From Macrostomum lignano (taxonomy: Eukaryota), in NCBI GenBank assembly GCA_002269645.1, contig NIVC01000219.1, forward strand, positions 124,001 to 188,000: a stretch of 64,000 nt of DNA, given 5' to 3'. Below are positions 27,563 through 41,435 of the stretch, in pieces. The translations under genes were made by a program, and so were the position numbers. The notes under the pieces were generated by a model. It was given only the letters and a program-made list of their open reading frames with translations, did no database searches and was not told where the DNA came from. The first letter of the stretch is position 1. Every line of letters begins with the position of its first letter.

Positions 27563-28444
27563 CTAAAAGTGTTCGCAGCACAGTCCCTGCAGCAGAGCAA
27601 CTTCAGAGTCCCTCAGAGCTCTCTCTGACACTCCGAAGCACCTCATGAAGCCCTCGAAGACGCGGTTGTGACCGGCATGACGGCTGACGGCTCCGATCTG
27701 CACGCTGCTGCCGAAGGTGGCCTGTCAAGTTCCGTTGACGAGGATCCTGACTTCCGGAGTCTGCTTGTCGTACACCGCGGCGATGTGGGTCCAACCGCTG
27801 GCCGTGTCGGTGGGTCCAGACACTGAGACCTTCGATACAACGGTGAACTTGATGTTGGTAGTTGTAGGATAAAGCCACAATCGAGTGTGGTATGAGAAAG
27901 GCATTGTGAGGCCCTCCAGCAGAGGCATCGCACCTCTCGCTGGGTTGGTGACCTTGAACCACACTGACATGCTGAGGCTGGTGAGACACACCGAAGTCAG
28001 CTGGTCAATGTTGAACCTCTCTGACACACCCGACTGACCAGTGAAGTTGACGGCATTGTCCGTGTACTGCATCGGGATGTTCTCCTGCAGGTCGAGATGG
28101 CCGCTGTTCGAGACCGCATTGCGAGTCCGAGTGGCGTTGCTCATGGGCCAGAAGGCGACGAGGCCGAGCTGGCGCAGGGCGCTCCATGACTGGCAGTCGG
28201 TGCCGTTCGTCAGACTGGCGGTCTGGAGGCTGTCCGACATGTTGCAGACGCCTGCGCGGTGGCTCCAGGCGATGCAGGGACGACGGATCTGAGAGCACAG
28301 GAAGGCGCACATGCGGGCGCTCGAGGCCGTCAGCGAGTGCTGCAGAGTCTGCGGCACCACGCAGCCGCCTGTCGAGGTTTCGTACGGGGCCGAGAGCGCC
28401 AGCGACAGAGCACAAAGCGCGAAAATGTTCGATTTGCAATGCAT
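27563..28444 (-). pseudogene. PAN-LamG paralogue 1 (modules A-X), disrupted
   Basis: ATG at 28444, signal peptide, type A Cys domain and shared core. CGA>TGA at 27727-27725 (Arg in copies 2 and 3), followed by an in-frame 36-nt deletion; homology then resumes to TAG at 27565-27563. Confidence 0.85.
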
Positions 28445-30290
28445 TTTCCTGCTGTCTTGCAACCAGAAAACTCAGAGGGTTGTGACGCTTTCTTTCTGAT
28501 GCAGCTGCTTTTAAACAGAAAAATCGATTTCTGCTTGCATTGAATTTAGTGAGCGGTTTGACTAGCTATTTCGGTAAATGACAGAATGGCTGCTGGGTCT
28601 AGGAGTAAGTGACTCACTTCTGGATCCATTATCCTCGACTACAGCATATCCAGCATCCGTTAATTTTTTCTATGCATGCATTAAGCTGATTTTTTTCACA
28701 TCCAGACAGCTAAAAGCAATCCATTGTGTCTGTCGCAATTTTTGAACGTCAATCAATGCAGACTGACAAGTTTGAAAAATGAAAAATCTGACGATGGTTA
28801 GAAGTCTTTAAGTCGCAAGAATCCCGATAATTATAAAATGATTGATGCTTTAAATAAAACTTAAAACTTGAACTAAATGGTATTCAGCTTGGAAAACCAG
28901 CTGGTGCCCATGGTATCCGGAATCAAATTTCAGGGTGCGAAAATTGATGGTTGCGACGTGTCATGACTCACGCTTATGATACAAAAATCCAAGATAGCAT
29001 CAAATTAACACTCAGTTTGGTTTCGTGTGATCATATTTGTTTTGAGTATAGCATGTTAGGCATAATCGTAATTTTCTACTTTCTACTTAAATTGTCTCTT
29101 AGCTATATAGCGATTTCAAACACACAAAAATGCTAGCTGACTTTCTAATTGCATAGAAATGCCATTCACTTGCCTAAACTCTCAGCAAAGAAACAAAGTT
29201 GTGGGACTGTAGCTGTGCCTTTTTAATTGGAATTCTTCAAAAAATGCTTACGGGAATTCACTGGCTGTCCCTAATAAGCTAAAATGGCAGCCCACGCGTT
29301 GCACCTGGGAATCAATAATTCAAGATGAGAACCTCTCCATCCATACCGCTGCGCCTGCATTGCCAATTAAGTTGGAAGCTTTTTGTTGGATTGCGTTTCC
29401 AGGCAGTTCAAACAAAGGCGAGTAGAGGCGCCTTGACTACGAGCTACAAGCGCTTTCGTGTTTATGAATTCTAAGCTGTTCTTCTCTTTTGCAAAGCCAA
29501 TTTAACAATGTCTCAGGTTCTACCTATTCAGAAGCGGAATGAAGCCCTTTAAAACTGGCTCTGTGTCTAGGATTGCCGGTTTGGCGATTTGCTGTGCACT
29601 TATCTATACAGTCTTGTTCTACCTAAAATTTCTATTGCAACCACTGAATTCTTTCTATTCCGTGGGCTTTTCTCCATGGTCAATTATGTCTTTTCAGCCT
29701 CCTGACTGATGATTTTAGTTGCGCGTCGCATCTTAAATTGAGACAAAGTTATAGATTGAAGCTAGTTTTACTGATTTTCTCTTAAAGTCTTTATAAACCC
29801 TTCCTTCAGAGCTTTCCTTCAAAGTGCTCTCTTCCAATATGCTTCCTCGTGTTCGTGTGTCCGTGTACTCACCAAGCAACAGACTCTAGCACGTACTTTC
29901 CTGTGCCTCTTGCAAACTGAAGTTCTATAAGAAGCAGGATGTTATGCACTTAACTTTTCTTAGTTACTCAATTAGAAAGTGAAACAAAGGTATGCTTCAC
30001 ATAAAGACCAAACTTTCCATTAAATCGGCCTGTTGACATCCGCGTAGGGCTAGAATAATGAGTATATTCTTGAAATTTAACGACAAACTTTCTCGCATAG
30101 AACATAGATACTCACAATTGAACAATCGCAGGGATAAGAATGTTCCGATTTGAAAAAAAAATAATGCTCGTATGCAAAAGGTTATAGTGTATGTATGTTT
30201 TTTACCCAGAAAAGGCAATTATAACTGATACGAAATGGATTTGACAAGCTCAAGAGGCTAAAAACATCGTTAAAATTTAGTTCAAGGTGA

Positions 30291-30948
30291 TTGAGGGGCT
30301 GAACACTATCCTTAATTTGCCTCCGCTTCATCTTTTCATTAGGGCGGAGGCTATGAAATCCGCCTCTCGACTTATCAGAGATAAAACGTTAAATAGCGCA
30401 CCCTCTGGCTATTATGAAAACCCAAATACCGCATATGGATTTTGTCCGCCGCGACCTCATAAACACCCACATGGACCCGGACAATGTGGATAGTCCCCTC
30501 CCCGCTCTCAACATCAGCAGGGGCTTCTAGGCCGCCATCCCACTGGATGTCGGCGTGAACCAGCGCAGCCAGAGCATTCACTGCTTCACCGAAGGCTCGC
30601 TGTTTAACGGCCGCGCTGGTGCGGGTATCGCCATCTTTCACGAGGGTTAGATCCTCTTCCAGGAAAGTCTGCGCCTCGGTGAGAACACCTCGGTTTTCCA
30701 AGCCGAAATCTGCTTCATTGAGCAGTGCGCCCAGCAACATCCATGACCTTCGCGCCTTCGCTAGGATGCCGGCCGGATACATGAGAGTGGCCGATGCCTC
30801 CACTGCGAACCTGCCGACTACTGGCGGGGGCTGGGCGCACCCCCAGGGTTAATTCTTGGTCGCTTTTACCTGGGGGTTGCGATTGAGGCCTCGCGGCCTA
30901 TTCGCAGCGCCTGCGCCCCCCGTCAGTAGTCAGTAGTAAGTAGGTAAG
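30291..30948 (+). mobile_element. 5'-truncated, degenerate non-LTR retrotransposon (RNase H-bearing, R1/LOA/I-group-like)
   Basis: 13-bp target-site duplication TAGTTCAAGGTGA at 30278-30290 and 30949-30961. Encodes LNLPPLHLFIRAEA and the RNase H remnant IHCFTEGS...GAGIAIF*...[12 protein letters not shown] (in-frame stop). GC-rich structured 3' UTR and an agtagt/gtaagt short-repeat tail. Confidence 0.85.
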
Positions 30949-40131: not shown

Positions 40132-40487
40132 TGTCTATGAAACTTAACATAATGCGGAAATTATCTTTGGCAAACGCAGCTTCCTGAAGCAAGACAAACA
40201 AAAAGTTGATGCATTGGATGAAACGAGGCAGGCAAGGCCTGCGATGGGACAACAGTGTTAACATGTGCGCGCTGTCTCATTGGCGACCTCGCTTGCGTAG
40301 TTTCCCTTTAAGAAAAATCTTGTTTGAGCTACCCGCAGCCTATAGCGCGACATTCGACGCGCAGTGGAAGCAGATCCGTTGCCACGAATATTCAAAGCAT
40401 TCAGTAGCTGGCCACAGACGGCATCCAGGAACACTTTGTCCGCAAATCAACAGTTATCTGAAGAATTTAAGAGAAGTCCAGACTGCA

Positions 40488-41435
40488 ATGAATCTCTCGA
40501 GTGTAGTGATGCGTTTGCTTCTCCTTCTCGTAGCGAGCACTTCTGTTGCAATCGCCAGTAAGCAGCAGGAGTTCTCTGTAACCAACGGTGGCTGTCTCAT
40601 GGTCGAAGAAAGCCAACAGCTCAAGGCATCCAGCGCTTGTTTCTGTGCCTCTCTCTGCTCAAGTCGGAGCTCCTGCATCGGATGGAGCTACCGACACGGC
40701 AGGTGCAACGTGTCGGACAGTGTCCATACGGTCTGGACGAACAATGCTAGCTGCAAGATGTGGAGTCGTTTGAGAGAGCTCGGCTTCGTCGCCTTCTGGC
40801 CCATGAGCAACGCCACTCGGACTCGCAATGCGGTCCCGAACAGCGGCCATCTCGACCTGCAGGAGAACATCCCGCTGCAGTACACGGACAATGCCGTCAA
40901 CTTCACTGGTCAGTCGGATGTGTCAGAGCGGTTCAACATTGACGAGCTGACTTCGGTGTGTCTCACCAGCTTCACCATGTCAGTGTGGGTCAAGGTCACC
41001 AACTCGACAAGGGGTCCGATGCCGCTTCTCGAAGGCCTCTCCATGCCCGATCAGTACTTCACTCGCCTGTGGCTGTATCCCGACACAACCAATCTGCAGT
41101 TTGTGATTGGAACAGCTGAATTCGCTAAGACCGTTTCTGGCCTGACGAGCACATCAGTCAGCTGGACTCACTTCGCAGTAGTTTACGACTCGGCGACTTT
41201 TTCCAACCGGATGCTAATCAGAATGTACGTTAATGGTTCGTTGAAGCAATCAGACAGCAGGACTCAGACATCATCTGCTTGTGTGCACTTTGGCAGCTCA
41301 GTGCAGATCGGAGCCATATCCAGATCGACCGGGCACAATCGCGTGTTTCAAGGCCACATGAACTGCTTTGCTGTTCTCGATCGGGCCATCAGCGAACTGG
41401 AAGTGGCTCAGATTCTCAGCATGTGTTCTCCGTGA
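40488..41435 (+). CDS. Secreted PAN-LamG paralogue 5 (B-Z), 315 aa, single exon
   Basis: ATG at 40488 precedes the signal peptide (MNLSSVVMRLLLLLVASTSVAIA); type B module nearly identical to copy 3; shared core; third LamG variant (WTHFAVVYD...MYVNGS...FQGHMNCFAVLDRAI). Confidence 0.85.
   Translation: MNLSSVVMRLLLLLVASTSVAIASKQQEFSVTNGGCLMVEESQQLKASSACFCASLCSSRSSCIGWSYRHGRCNVSDSVHTVWTNNASCKMWSRLRELGFVAFWPMSNATRTRNAVPNSGHLDLQENIPLQYTDNAVNFTGQSDVSERFNIDELTSVCLTSFTMSVWVKVTNSTRGPMPLLEGLSMPDQYFTRLWLYPDTTNLQFVIGTAEFAKTVSGLTSTSVSWTHFAVVYDSATFSNRMLIRMYVNGSLKQSDSRTQTSSACVHFGSSVQIGAISRSTGHNRVFQGHMNCFAVLDRAISELEVAQILSMCSP

Follow-up and report, generated by a model that had tools for sequence, protein, structure and literature searches.

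A 64-kb stretch of the Macrostomum lignano genome (hereafter, the window) carries a cluster of five paralogous genes (g1 to g5, positions 27576-41435) in which two N-terminal modules and three C-terminal modules are combined around a nearly invariant coding segment, the core. This arrangement is probably the product of interlocus gene conversion within the coding sequence (CDS) of an old clustered family. The cluster displays a mosaic of modules, a dip in synonymous divergence (dS) at the core, unrelated flanks and variable tract ends. Each core lies in a single long open reading frame (ORF), and these five ORFs, all of which correspond to single-exon genes, are listed below with their N-terminal (A or B) and C-terminal (X, Y or Z) modules.

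27576-28444, minus strand: g1, A-core-X pseudogene (ORF; comparison of stops and indels with g2 and g3)
31177-32100, minus strand: g2, A-core-X, intact, 307 amino acids (aa), with a signal peptide, a PAN-like module and Laminin_G_3
35737-36702, plus strand: g3, B-core-X, an ORF without an in-frame ATG upstream of the signal peptide
37679-38605, minus strand: g4, A-core-Y, intact, 308 aa (ORF, Pfam)
40488-41435, plus strand: g5, B-core-Z, intact, 315 aa from the ATG at 40488 (ORF, Pfam)

Mosaic structure and divergence of the five genes

A first-pass annotation of the window had described five ungapped and near-identical copies of a 178-bp core, at 27982-28159(-), 31620-31797(-), 36082-36259(+), 38134-38311(-) and 40788-40965(+). 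All five copies were recovered at these positions, with two to eight differences per pair over the 178 positions. A 42-nt piece from the centre of the core had exactly five exact matches in the window (0 expected by chance), and a tblastn search of the window revealed no sixth copy. The sharing of the core was thus confirmed, but not its extent: the true shared tract is 189 bp long and begins 11 bp upstream of the annotated 178-bp core. The copies, as delimited by alignment, are as follows.

27982-28170, minus strand: core copy 1, 189 bp
31620-31808, minus strand: core copy 2, 189 bp
36071-36259, plus strand: core copy 3, 189 bp
38134-38322, minus strand: core copy 4, 189 bp
40777-40965, plus strand: core copy 5, 189 bp, with X-like similarity continuing to 41003-41023

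The module types initially assigned to the genes were correct: A is present in g1, g2 and g4, B in g3 and g5, X in g1, g2 and g3, Y in g4 and Z in g5. Module A was always found on the minus strand and module B always on the plus strand, and X was present on both strands.

28171-28369, minus strand: A N-module of g1, PAN-like
31809-32009, minus strand: A N-module of g2, PAN-like
38323-38523, minus strand: A N-module of g4, PAN-like
35853-36070, plus strand: B N-module of g3, PAN-like
40559-40776, plus strand: B N-module of g5, PAN-like
27577-27981, minus strand: X C-module of g1, homology ending at the stop codon
31179-31619, minus strand: X C-module of g2, homology ending at the stop codon
36260-36700, plus strand: X C-module of g3, homology ending at the stop codon
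37679-38133, minus strand: Y C-module, in g4 only
40966-41435, plus strand: Z C-module, in g5 only, the first 38-58 bp still X-like

The A copies were 97-98% identical to one another and the X copies 93-96%. In sliding windows, identity was 63-68% between A and B and 40-65% among X, Y and Z, and it rose to 96-100% in the core for all ten pairs of genes. The dip in synonymous divergence predicted at the core was indeed found, with dS values of 0.025-0.078 in all ten pairs, versus >1.2 between the A and B modules (1.2-1.8); the values among X, Y and Z ranged from 0.7 to saturation. The difference between the core and the N-module in synonymous changes was highly significant (Fisher P ~5e-9), and the dip excludes purifying selection on the protein alone. 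Divergence between modules of the same type (dS of 0.065-0.11 for A-A, 0.085 for B-B and 0.06-0.18 for X-X) was of the same order as that of the core, indicating that all the shared segments are similarly young. Of 786 aligned CDS sites, 252 (32%) differ between g3 and g4, yet the two genes share an identical run of 158 bp, the longest identical run in 2000 permutations of the columns of this alignment being 33 bp. For nine of the ten gene pairs, identical runs were longer than in all 2000 permutations. The mosaic structure of the five genes is therefore real and non-random.

The genealogy of the core was found to be uncoupled from the type of N-module, as the first-pass annotation had held. 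Its three amino-acid variants are distributed over the five copies as originally described (S/P: S,P,S,S,P; N/S: N,S,S,S,N; Q/E: Q,E,Q,E,E), with all four combinations of each variant and the A/B type observed, and likewise all four combinations of S/P and N/S. Inside the core, an AT/GC doublet at positions 103-104 was alone in being incompatible with other sites, and the core haplotypes fitted a tree once this doublet was removed. The GC content at third codon positions (GC3) was 0.90-0.93 for A, 0.80 for the core, 0.70-0.75 for B, 0.69-0.71 for X and 0.63-0.65 for Y and Z. This trend, for unpolarised changes, is no more than loosely compatible with GC-biased conversion; the GC3 of X, which has three copies, lies near that of B, so the relationship of GC3 to copy number is itself loose.

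Flanks, tract ends and the mode of exchange

The similarity between paralogues was limited to the mature CDS, beginning a few codons before the first cysteine and ending no more than a few bases from the stop codon. Even in the pairs g1/g2 (91-95% identical across the whole mature CDS) and g2/g3 (95.7% identical over 630 bp), identity had fallen to background immediately before the mature N-terminus and again at the stop. The signal peptides, upstream regions and 3' flanks of g1-g5 are mutually unrelated, and a sensitive blastn search of the 2.5-kb flanks detected only a dispersed repeat resembling a short interspersed element (SINE). Thus, no two of the three X copies have related 3' flanks, and no two of the three A copies have related 5' flanks. 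Non-reciprocal copying is required to account for this, because crossovers, unequal exchange and segmental duplications take the flanks along. Once conversion is granted, inversion is unnecessary to explain the B-X gene. Three other origins were also considered and rejected: segmental duplication is ruled out by the unrelated flanks, retroposition by the absence of the untranslated regions and signal peptide from the homology, and haplotype mis-assembly by the unique flanks of each gene.

The shared tracts ranged in length from 189 to 653 bp, with ends differing between pairs: g3/g4 and g4/g5 share 189 bp, g5 shares 227-247 bp with g1 and g2 (both A-X), g4 shares 388-390 bp with the other A genes, and g2/g3 share 630 bp. 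The boundary of A and B lies 11 bp upstream of the 178-bp core, that of Y at the 3' end of the core and that of Z 38-58 bp beyond it. The g4 (A-Y) and g5 (B-Z) genes have only the 189-bp tract in common, with unrelated sequence on both sides, and this tract has the appearance of a short conversion patch. The core had been proposed to act as a single recombination hinge, but end-points were found at the edge of the signal peptide, at both edges of the core, farther downstream in g5 and within the C-modules (in an unlinked sixth paralogue and in another version of g3, both described below). Such variable end-points are the signature of homologous repair between paralogues rather than of exchange at a fixed site. 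Nor is the core an inter-domain hinge or linker. It corresponds to residues ~102-160 of g2 and runs from where the PAN-like module ends across the first LamG-like strands, its ~59 residues making up the initial third of the LamG/pentraxin-like domain.

These observations are consistent with a model in which the five loci would have diverged long ago, as indicated by their unrelated promoters, signal peptides and 3' flanks and by the saturated dS between module types, and would later have undergone repeated non-reciprocal conversion inside the mature CDS, in direct and inverted orientations alike. Module A would have been copied into three loci, B into two and X into three, and the ~189-bp segment for the first LamG-like strands into all five. 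The core may then simply be the overlap of all the conversion tracts. It was probably the best-conserved stretch originally and thus a preferred homology anchor, in a process that would reinforce itself. The repair route might be synthesis-dependent strand annealing or gap repair anchored in conserved islands. Crossover-associated inversions between inverted cores may occur occasionally as a by-product, but the model does not need them.

The g1 gene is a pseudogene, with an in-frame TGA (27725-27727), a 39-bp in-frame deletion relative to g2 and g3 and a change of the stop codon to TGC. Despite this decay, it retains 92-98% identity to the intact genes over its A, core and X segments, and it may act as a conversion donor.

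Inversion, assembly and other explanations

The alternatives were weighed with the help of the few close relatives of these proteins. Searches of 5.8 billion clustered and 1.84 billion representative proteins yielded only three such relatives, all of them M. lignano UniProt entries. Word-indexed protein searches detected only one (P0001), and an exhaustive HMMER scan added A0A1I8IHS7 (P0002) and A0A1I8IN27 (P0003), the remaining HMMER matches being generic multi-LamG_3 giant proteins. P0001 is a sixth, unlinked paralogue composed of A, the core and an X-like C-module broken by a novel patch. The exact proteins P0001, g2, g4 and g5 had no match in look-ups of public assemblies, and none of the metagenome contigs scanned contained a 42-nt piece taken from the core. 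The first 232 residues of A0A1I8IN27 are identical to g1, and the rest of this model, which splices across the g1 stop codon, comes from the neighbouring gene:

17404-26354, minus strand: MatE transporter gene, the neighbour of g1

A0A1I8IHS7, derived from the ML2 assembly, is a fused model of 1519 aa, the pieces of which are collinear with the window between 19 and 49 kb (96-100% identity). On the plus strand, it consists of antisense g2, sense g3, antisense Y of g4, antisense core and A of g4, the ORF at 39366-39449 and sense g5, and it continues into the downstream RING and other genes. Both entries are chimeric gene models (locus 17404-49524). The order and orientation of the genes in A0A1I8IHS7 are as in the window, and the 36260-38133 interval is not inverted. 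The two published assemblies of the sequenced line share PacBio reads (PMC5730564), and the independence of the ML2 view is limited accordingly. The two versions differ at 12 of 279 residues in g3 and 9 of 979 elsewhere (P = 5e-4), and 10 of the 12 differences in g3 agree with the residue of another paralogue, namely g5 for those in the core and g1 or g2 for those in X. It is possible that these differences result from conversion recent enough to separate haplotypes or duplicated chromosome copies, or from consensus or polishing cross-talk.

The first-pass annotation attributed the module combinations to crossover or inversion between cores. Reciprocal non-allelic homologous recombination (NAHR) in the core would flip the interval between inverted copies and yield chimeric duplicates from direct copies, with the inversion polymorphic in the germline; as the main generator, we consider it unlikely. 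The geometry is suitable: in-frame cores in inverted orientation, with 96-99% identity, are separated by 1.9-4.3 kb, the A/B type tracks the strand, and X is present on both strands. Inversion would also preserve every reading frame: simulated inversion of 36260-38133 gave full-length B-Y and A-X, that of 38312-40787 gave A-Z and B-Y, and that of 31798-36081 exchanged the N-modules of g2 and g3, all three inversions leaving intact ORFs of 298-313 aa. However, crossovers would drag flanks along, and the 3' flanks of X and the 5' flanks and signal peptides of A are unrelated, so that non-reciprocal copying is needed regardless. Likewise, the tract of only 189 bp shared by g4 and g5 requires a short conversion rather than a single crossover, and 189 bp does not exceed the length of homology commonly cited for efficient NAHR in animals. 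The ML2 gene model has the same arrangement as the window, and the public protein sets searched contained neither a B-Y nor an A-Z protein.

Conversion between inverted repeats is sometimes associated with crossover, and occasional crossover-associated inversions over evolutionary time are plausible here, since conversion between inverted copies evidently happened. The sequence itself holds no sign that such an inversion took place. Recurrent flipping without a recombinase, whether germline-polymorphic or somatic, is a different proposition; it would make the cluster a eukaryotic functional analogue of the bacterial shufflon, with B-Y and A-Z present in some worms or cells, and we think it has very little chance of being correct. 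If it were true, the cluster would make combinatorial diversification without a recombinase tractable in a flatworm amenable to transgenesis.

An assembly or polishing artefact, with the core or the junctions produced by cross-talk between paralogues or homeologues or by mis-joins in a repeat-rich neopolyploid genome, appears very improbable. The assemblies of M. lignano are redundant and error-prone: the proportion of error-free bases according to REAPR is 63.95% for Mlig_3_7, which was polished by Pilon with Illumina and RNA-seq reads, and 31.92% for ML2 (PMC5730564). Short-read polishing cannot place reads uniquely in a near-identical 189-bp tract, and the disagreement between ML2 and the window is mainly in g3. 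Nevertheless, each gene has unique flanks and a signal peptide of its own, so the copies are not duplicated haplotypes, and multi-kb long reads easily span a 189-bp repeat. Two ML2 gene models reproduce g1 and g5 almost exactly, together with the order and orientation of the genes, and the unlinked P0001, itself mosaic, has the same core. The few variant sites of the core, at core positions 48, 103-104, 141 and 156, could be affected by such artefacts, but the module structure could not.

A programmed or somatic generator of diversity, comparable to the shufflon, the variable lymphocyte receptors (VLR) of lampreys or the fibrinogen-related proteins (FREP) of snails, would use the core to build a repertoire of PAN-LamG combinations. 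The geometry allows this, the products are secreted lectin/pentraxin-like proteins, a class used in invertebrate immunity, and the window and ML2 differ by paralogue-templated patches in g3. We nevertheless regard it as extremely unlikely, and the initial shufflon analogy does not hold for a eukaryotic cluster of complete, separately promoted genes in which the ORFs scanned revealed no recombinase and the repeats are 189-bp segments of coding homology rather than short sites. In contrast to cassette systems, each gene carries a separate signal peptide and upstream region. One of the five is decaying as a pseudogene, and tract ends that vary in this way are what background homologous repair typically leaves. 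The view that the cluster lacks a dedicated recombinase was borne out by the ORFs scanned: a Pfam search of the five genes and ten other ORFs of the window (three of them in the cluster; short ORFs were not covered exhaustively) detected no recombinase or transposase, the matches being to MatE, RING, Med26 and Cornifin (the last on a tandem-repeat ORF), with some sub-threshold matches. No short repeats resembling recombination signals and no special structure were found in or beside the core, and a check of the core for palindromes and hairpins revealed none of note, the sole palindrome being CCTGCAGG.

Selection on the core at the nucleotide level (for instance through an RNA element, binding site or antisense gene) in place of recombination is equally hard to credit: synonymous sites of the core are almost invariant, and long antisense ORFs, used even by a gene predictor, overlap the region, but GC3-rich coding DNA is expected to contain such ORFs, no Rfam family matched anywhere between 26 and 44 kb, the predicted RNA fold of the core is no better than that of shuffled sequence (z = +0.73), the equally low dS within A, B and X would not be explained by selection on the core, and the incompatible variant patterns inside the core point to exchange.

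Several points weigh against interlocus conversion as the explanation for the mosaic. The replacement of an entire ~35%-diverged module is difficult to achieve by heteroduplex conversion and would call for gap repair from short conserved islands. The ends of all three X tracts fall only a few bases from the stop codon, neater than random end-points would suggest. Inversion would be expected to leave the alternating orientation observed, in which A is confined to the minus strand and B to the plus strand, although with five genes such a pattern has a probability of ~0.1 of arising by chance. The GC3 trend may have other causes. If the sequence was polished with short reads, reads from paralogues may have scrambled the few variant sites of the core and may have contributed to the disagreement of ML2 with the window. 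Finally, the analysis covered one assembled sequence and the related protein models, which do not establish when or in which direction the transfers occurred, or that inversions were absent.

The protein family, its locus and comparable systems

The proteins consist of a signal peptide, a ~70-residue, weakly PAN/apple-like module with six cysteines and a Laminin_G_3/pentraxin-like domain of the concanavalin A-like lectin superfamily. They had been described as receptors, a term without support, as g1-g5 have a signal peptide but no membrane anchor. Laminin_G_3 (PF13385) was detected in g2-g5 with E values of 1e-13 to 1e-17 (profile positions 11-151), and the nearest solved relative by sequence is the pentraxin domain of PTX3 (E 9e-5). 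The pattern of six cysteines in the N-module is compatible with PAN, and the matches to PAN_1 (14.3 and 11.5 bits, below the Pfam cut-off of 21.4; E 0.036 and 0.29) and PAN_4 (E 0.17) were sub-threshold. An AlphaFold model based on an alignment of the five sequences had a confidence score (pLDDT) of 36, too low for use. These proteins may be secreted carbohydrate- or pattern-binding proteins. The ratio of nonsynonymous to synonymous divergence between module types (0.2-0.5) does not indicate module-wide positive selection. No description of a family combining a PAN-like module with LamG_3 was found in the literature on Macrostomum; the family is undescribed and so far known only from this genus.

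The ORF of g3 raises the question of its start codon. The spliced leader of M. lignano terminates in ATG (PMC8629364). Trans-splicing at TGTCAG/AAT (~35767/35768) would place the leader ATG in frame, with the product MNNKKYYCSAIKLPLLVYLLLFSLTALA/NKQQ, and CTGCAG/ at ~35790 is a better acceptor match but out of frame. Thus, g3 may either rely on a spliced-leader AUG or be dead.

The density of tandem repeats in the window is extreme. The arrays include (ACT)x173 and a 13-mer x87 between g2 and g3 (32903-33420 and 34217-35367), a 20-mer x298 covering 6 kb (49739-55685) and more than 15 others, and several of them look like long ORFs. This density fits the M. lignano genome, 15% of which is composed of simple and tandem repeats (PMC5730564). 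Arrays close to g1-g5 could promote breaks. The 3' flanks of the coding modules have a GC content of 31-38%. Several other features were observed at the locus. Two plus-strand copies, ~85% identical, of a tRNA-derived SINE-like element with the B-box GGTTCGATTCYCGA lie in the 3' flanks of g3 (37088-37395) and g5 (42778-43079), and ARAGORN detected no tRNA gene at either copy. Between the 5' ends of g4 and g5 lies a nested foldback (39452-40131). One pair of arms measures 235 nt, with 98% complementarity and a spacing of 76 nt, and another measures 139 nt, with 96% complementarity; the structure resembles a foldback element or a miniature inverted-repeat transposable element. A RING-finger exon (43772-44389) downstream of g5 and an ORF for a Med26/TFIIS-type helical bundle (10489-11061) upstream of the MatE gene are unrelated to the lectin-like family.

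The cluster provides a small and clean example of conversion that would homogenise one segment while reshuffling diverged modules among old paralogues, strictly within the mature coding sequence. Families of this type are typical candidates for roles in immunity, mucus or adhesion, or reproductive interactions. The cluster is also a trap for annotation and assembly, having given rise to two chimeric UniProt entries that include antisense ORFs, and short-read polishing and RNA-seq mapping across the core can be expected to be unreliable.

Interlocus gene conversion is known in the major histocompatibility complex (MHC), KIR, globin and opsin clusters. The M. lignano cluster resembles these in its linked direct and inverted paralogues, discordant segment genealogies, sharp dS dip and variable tract ends, in tracts lying within already homologous sequence, and possibly in GC bias. 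It differs from them in its wholly unrelated flanks and signal peptides, in having one short tract present in all members amid modules with saturated dS, and in the apparent replacement of whole ~35%-diverged modules. NAHR inversions between inverted paralogous repeats, such as those of human FLNA-EMD and F8 intron 22, also involve highly similar inverted segments able to convert each other and to flip the interval between them, but those repeats are of kilobase scale, whereas the tract here is 189 bp and a single orientation was found in the window and in the ML2 model. In the bacterial shufflon, the Rci recombinase acts on ~19-bp sfx repeats in pilV of IncI plasmids. The two systems share inverted repeats in frame within a CDS, such that inversion would swap C-terminal segments; unlike the shufflon, the cluster has ~189 bp of coding homology and several complete genes on a eukaryotic chromosome, no recombinase was found among the ORFs scanned, and non-reciprocal copying is indicated.

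Among flatworms, the polymorphic mucin (SmPoMuc) genes of Schistosoma mansoni, which Roger et al. are said to have described in 2008, reportedly form a multigene family in which recombination between members adds to protein polymorphism; these genes are said to be multi-exon, with tandem-repeat exons, and to owe some of their diversity to splicing and expression control. The resemblance lies in recombination between the members of a flatworm multigene family, but the proteins are unrelated to the lectin-like family. In the sea urchin, gene conversion or recombination has been proposed to diversify the clustered Sp185/333 (SpTransformer) genes (Miller et al. 2010, PMC3091723). As in the M. lignano cluster, these are small and tightly clustered genes for secreted proteins, with mosaic elements, intergenic tandem repeats and a difficult assembly. 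The Sp185/333 genes, however, have shared, microsatellite-bounded flanks rather than unrelated ones, and some of these genes lie in segmental duplications; they number more than 40, with two exons each and a demonstrated immune role, versus about six known single-exon genes here. The closest described systems are conversion-shaped clusters of immune type such as Sp185/333.

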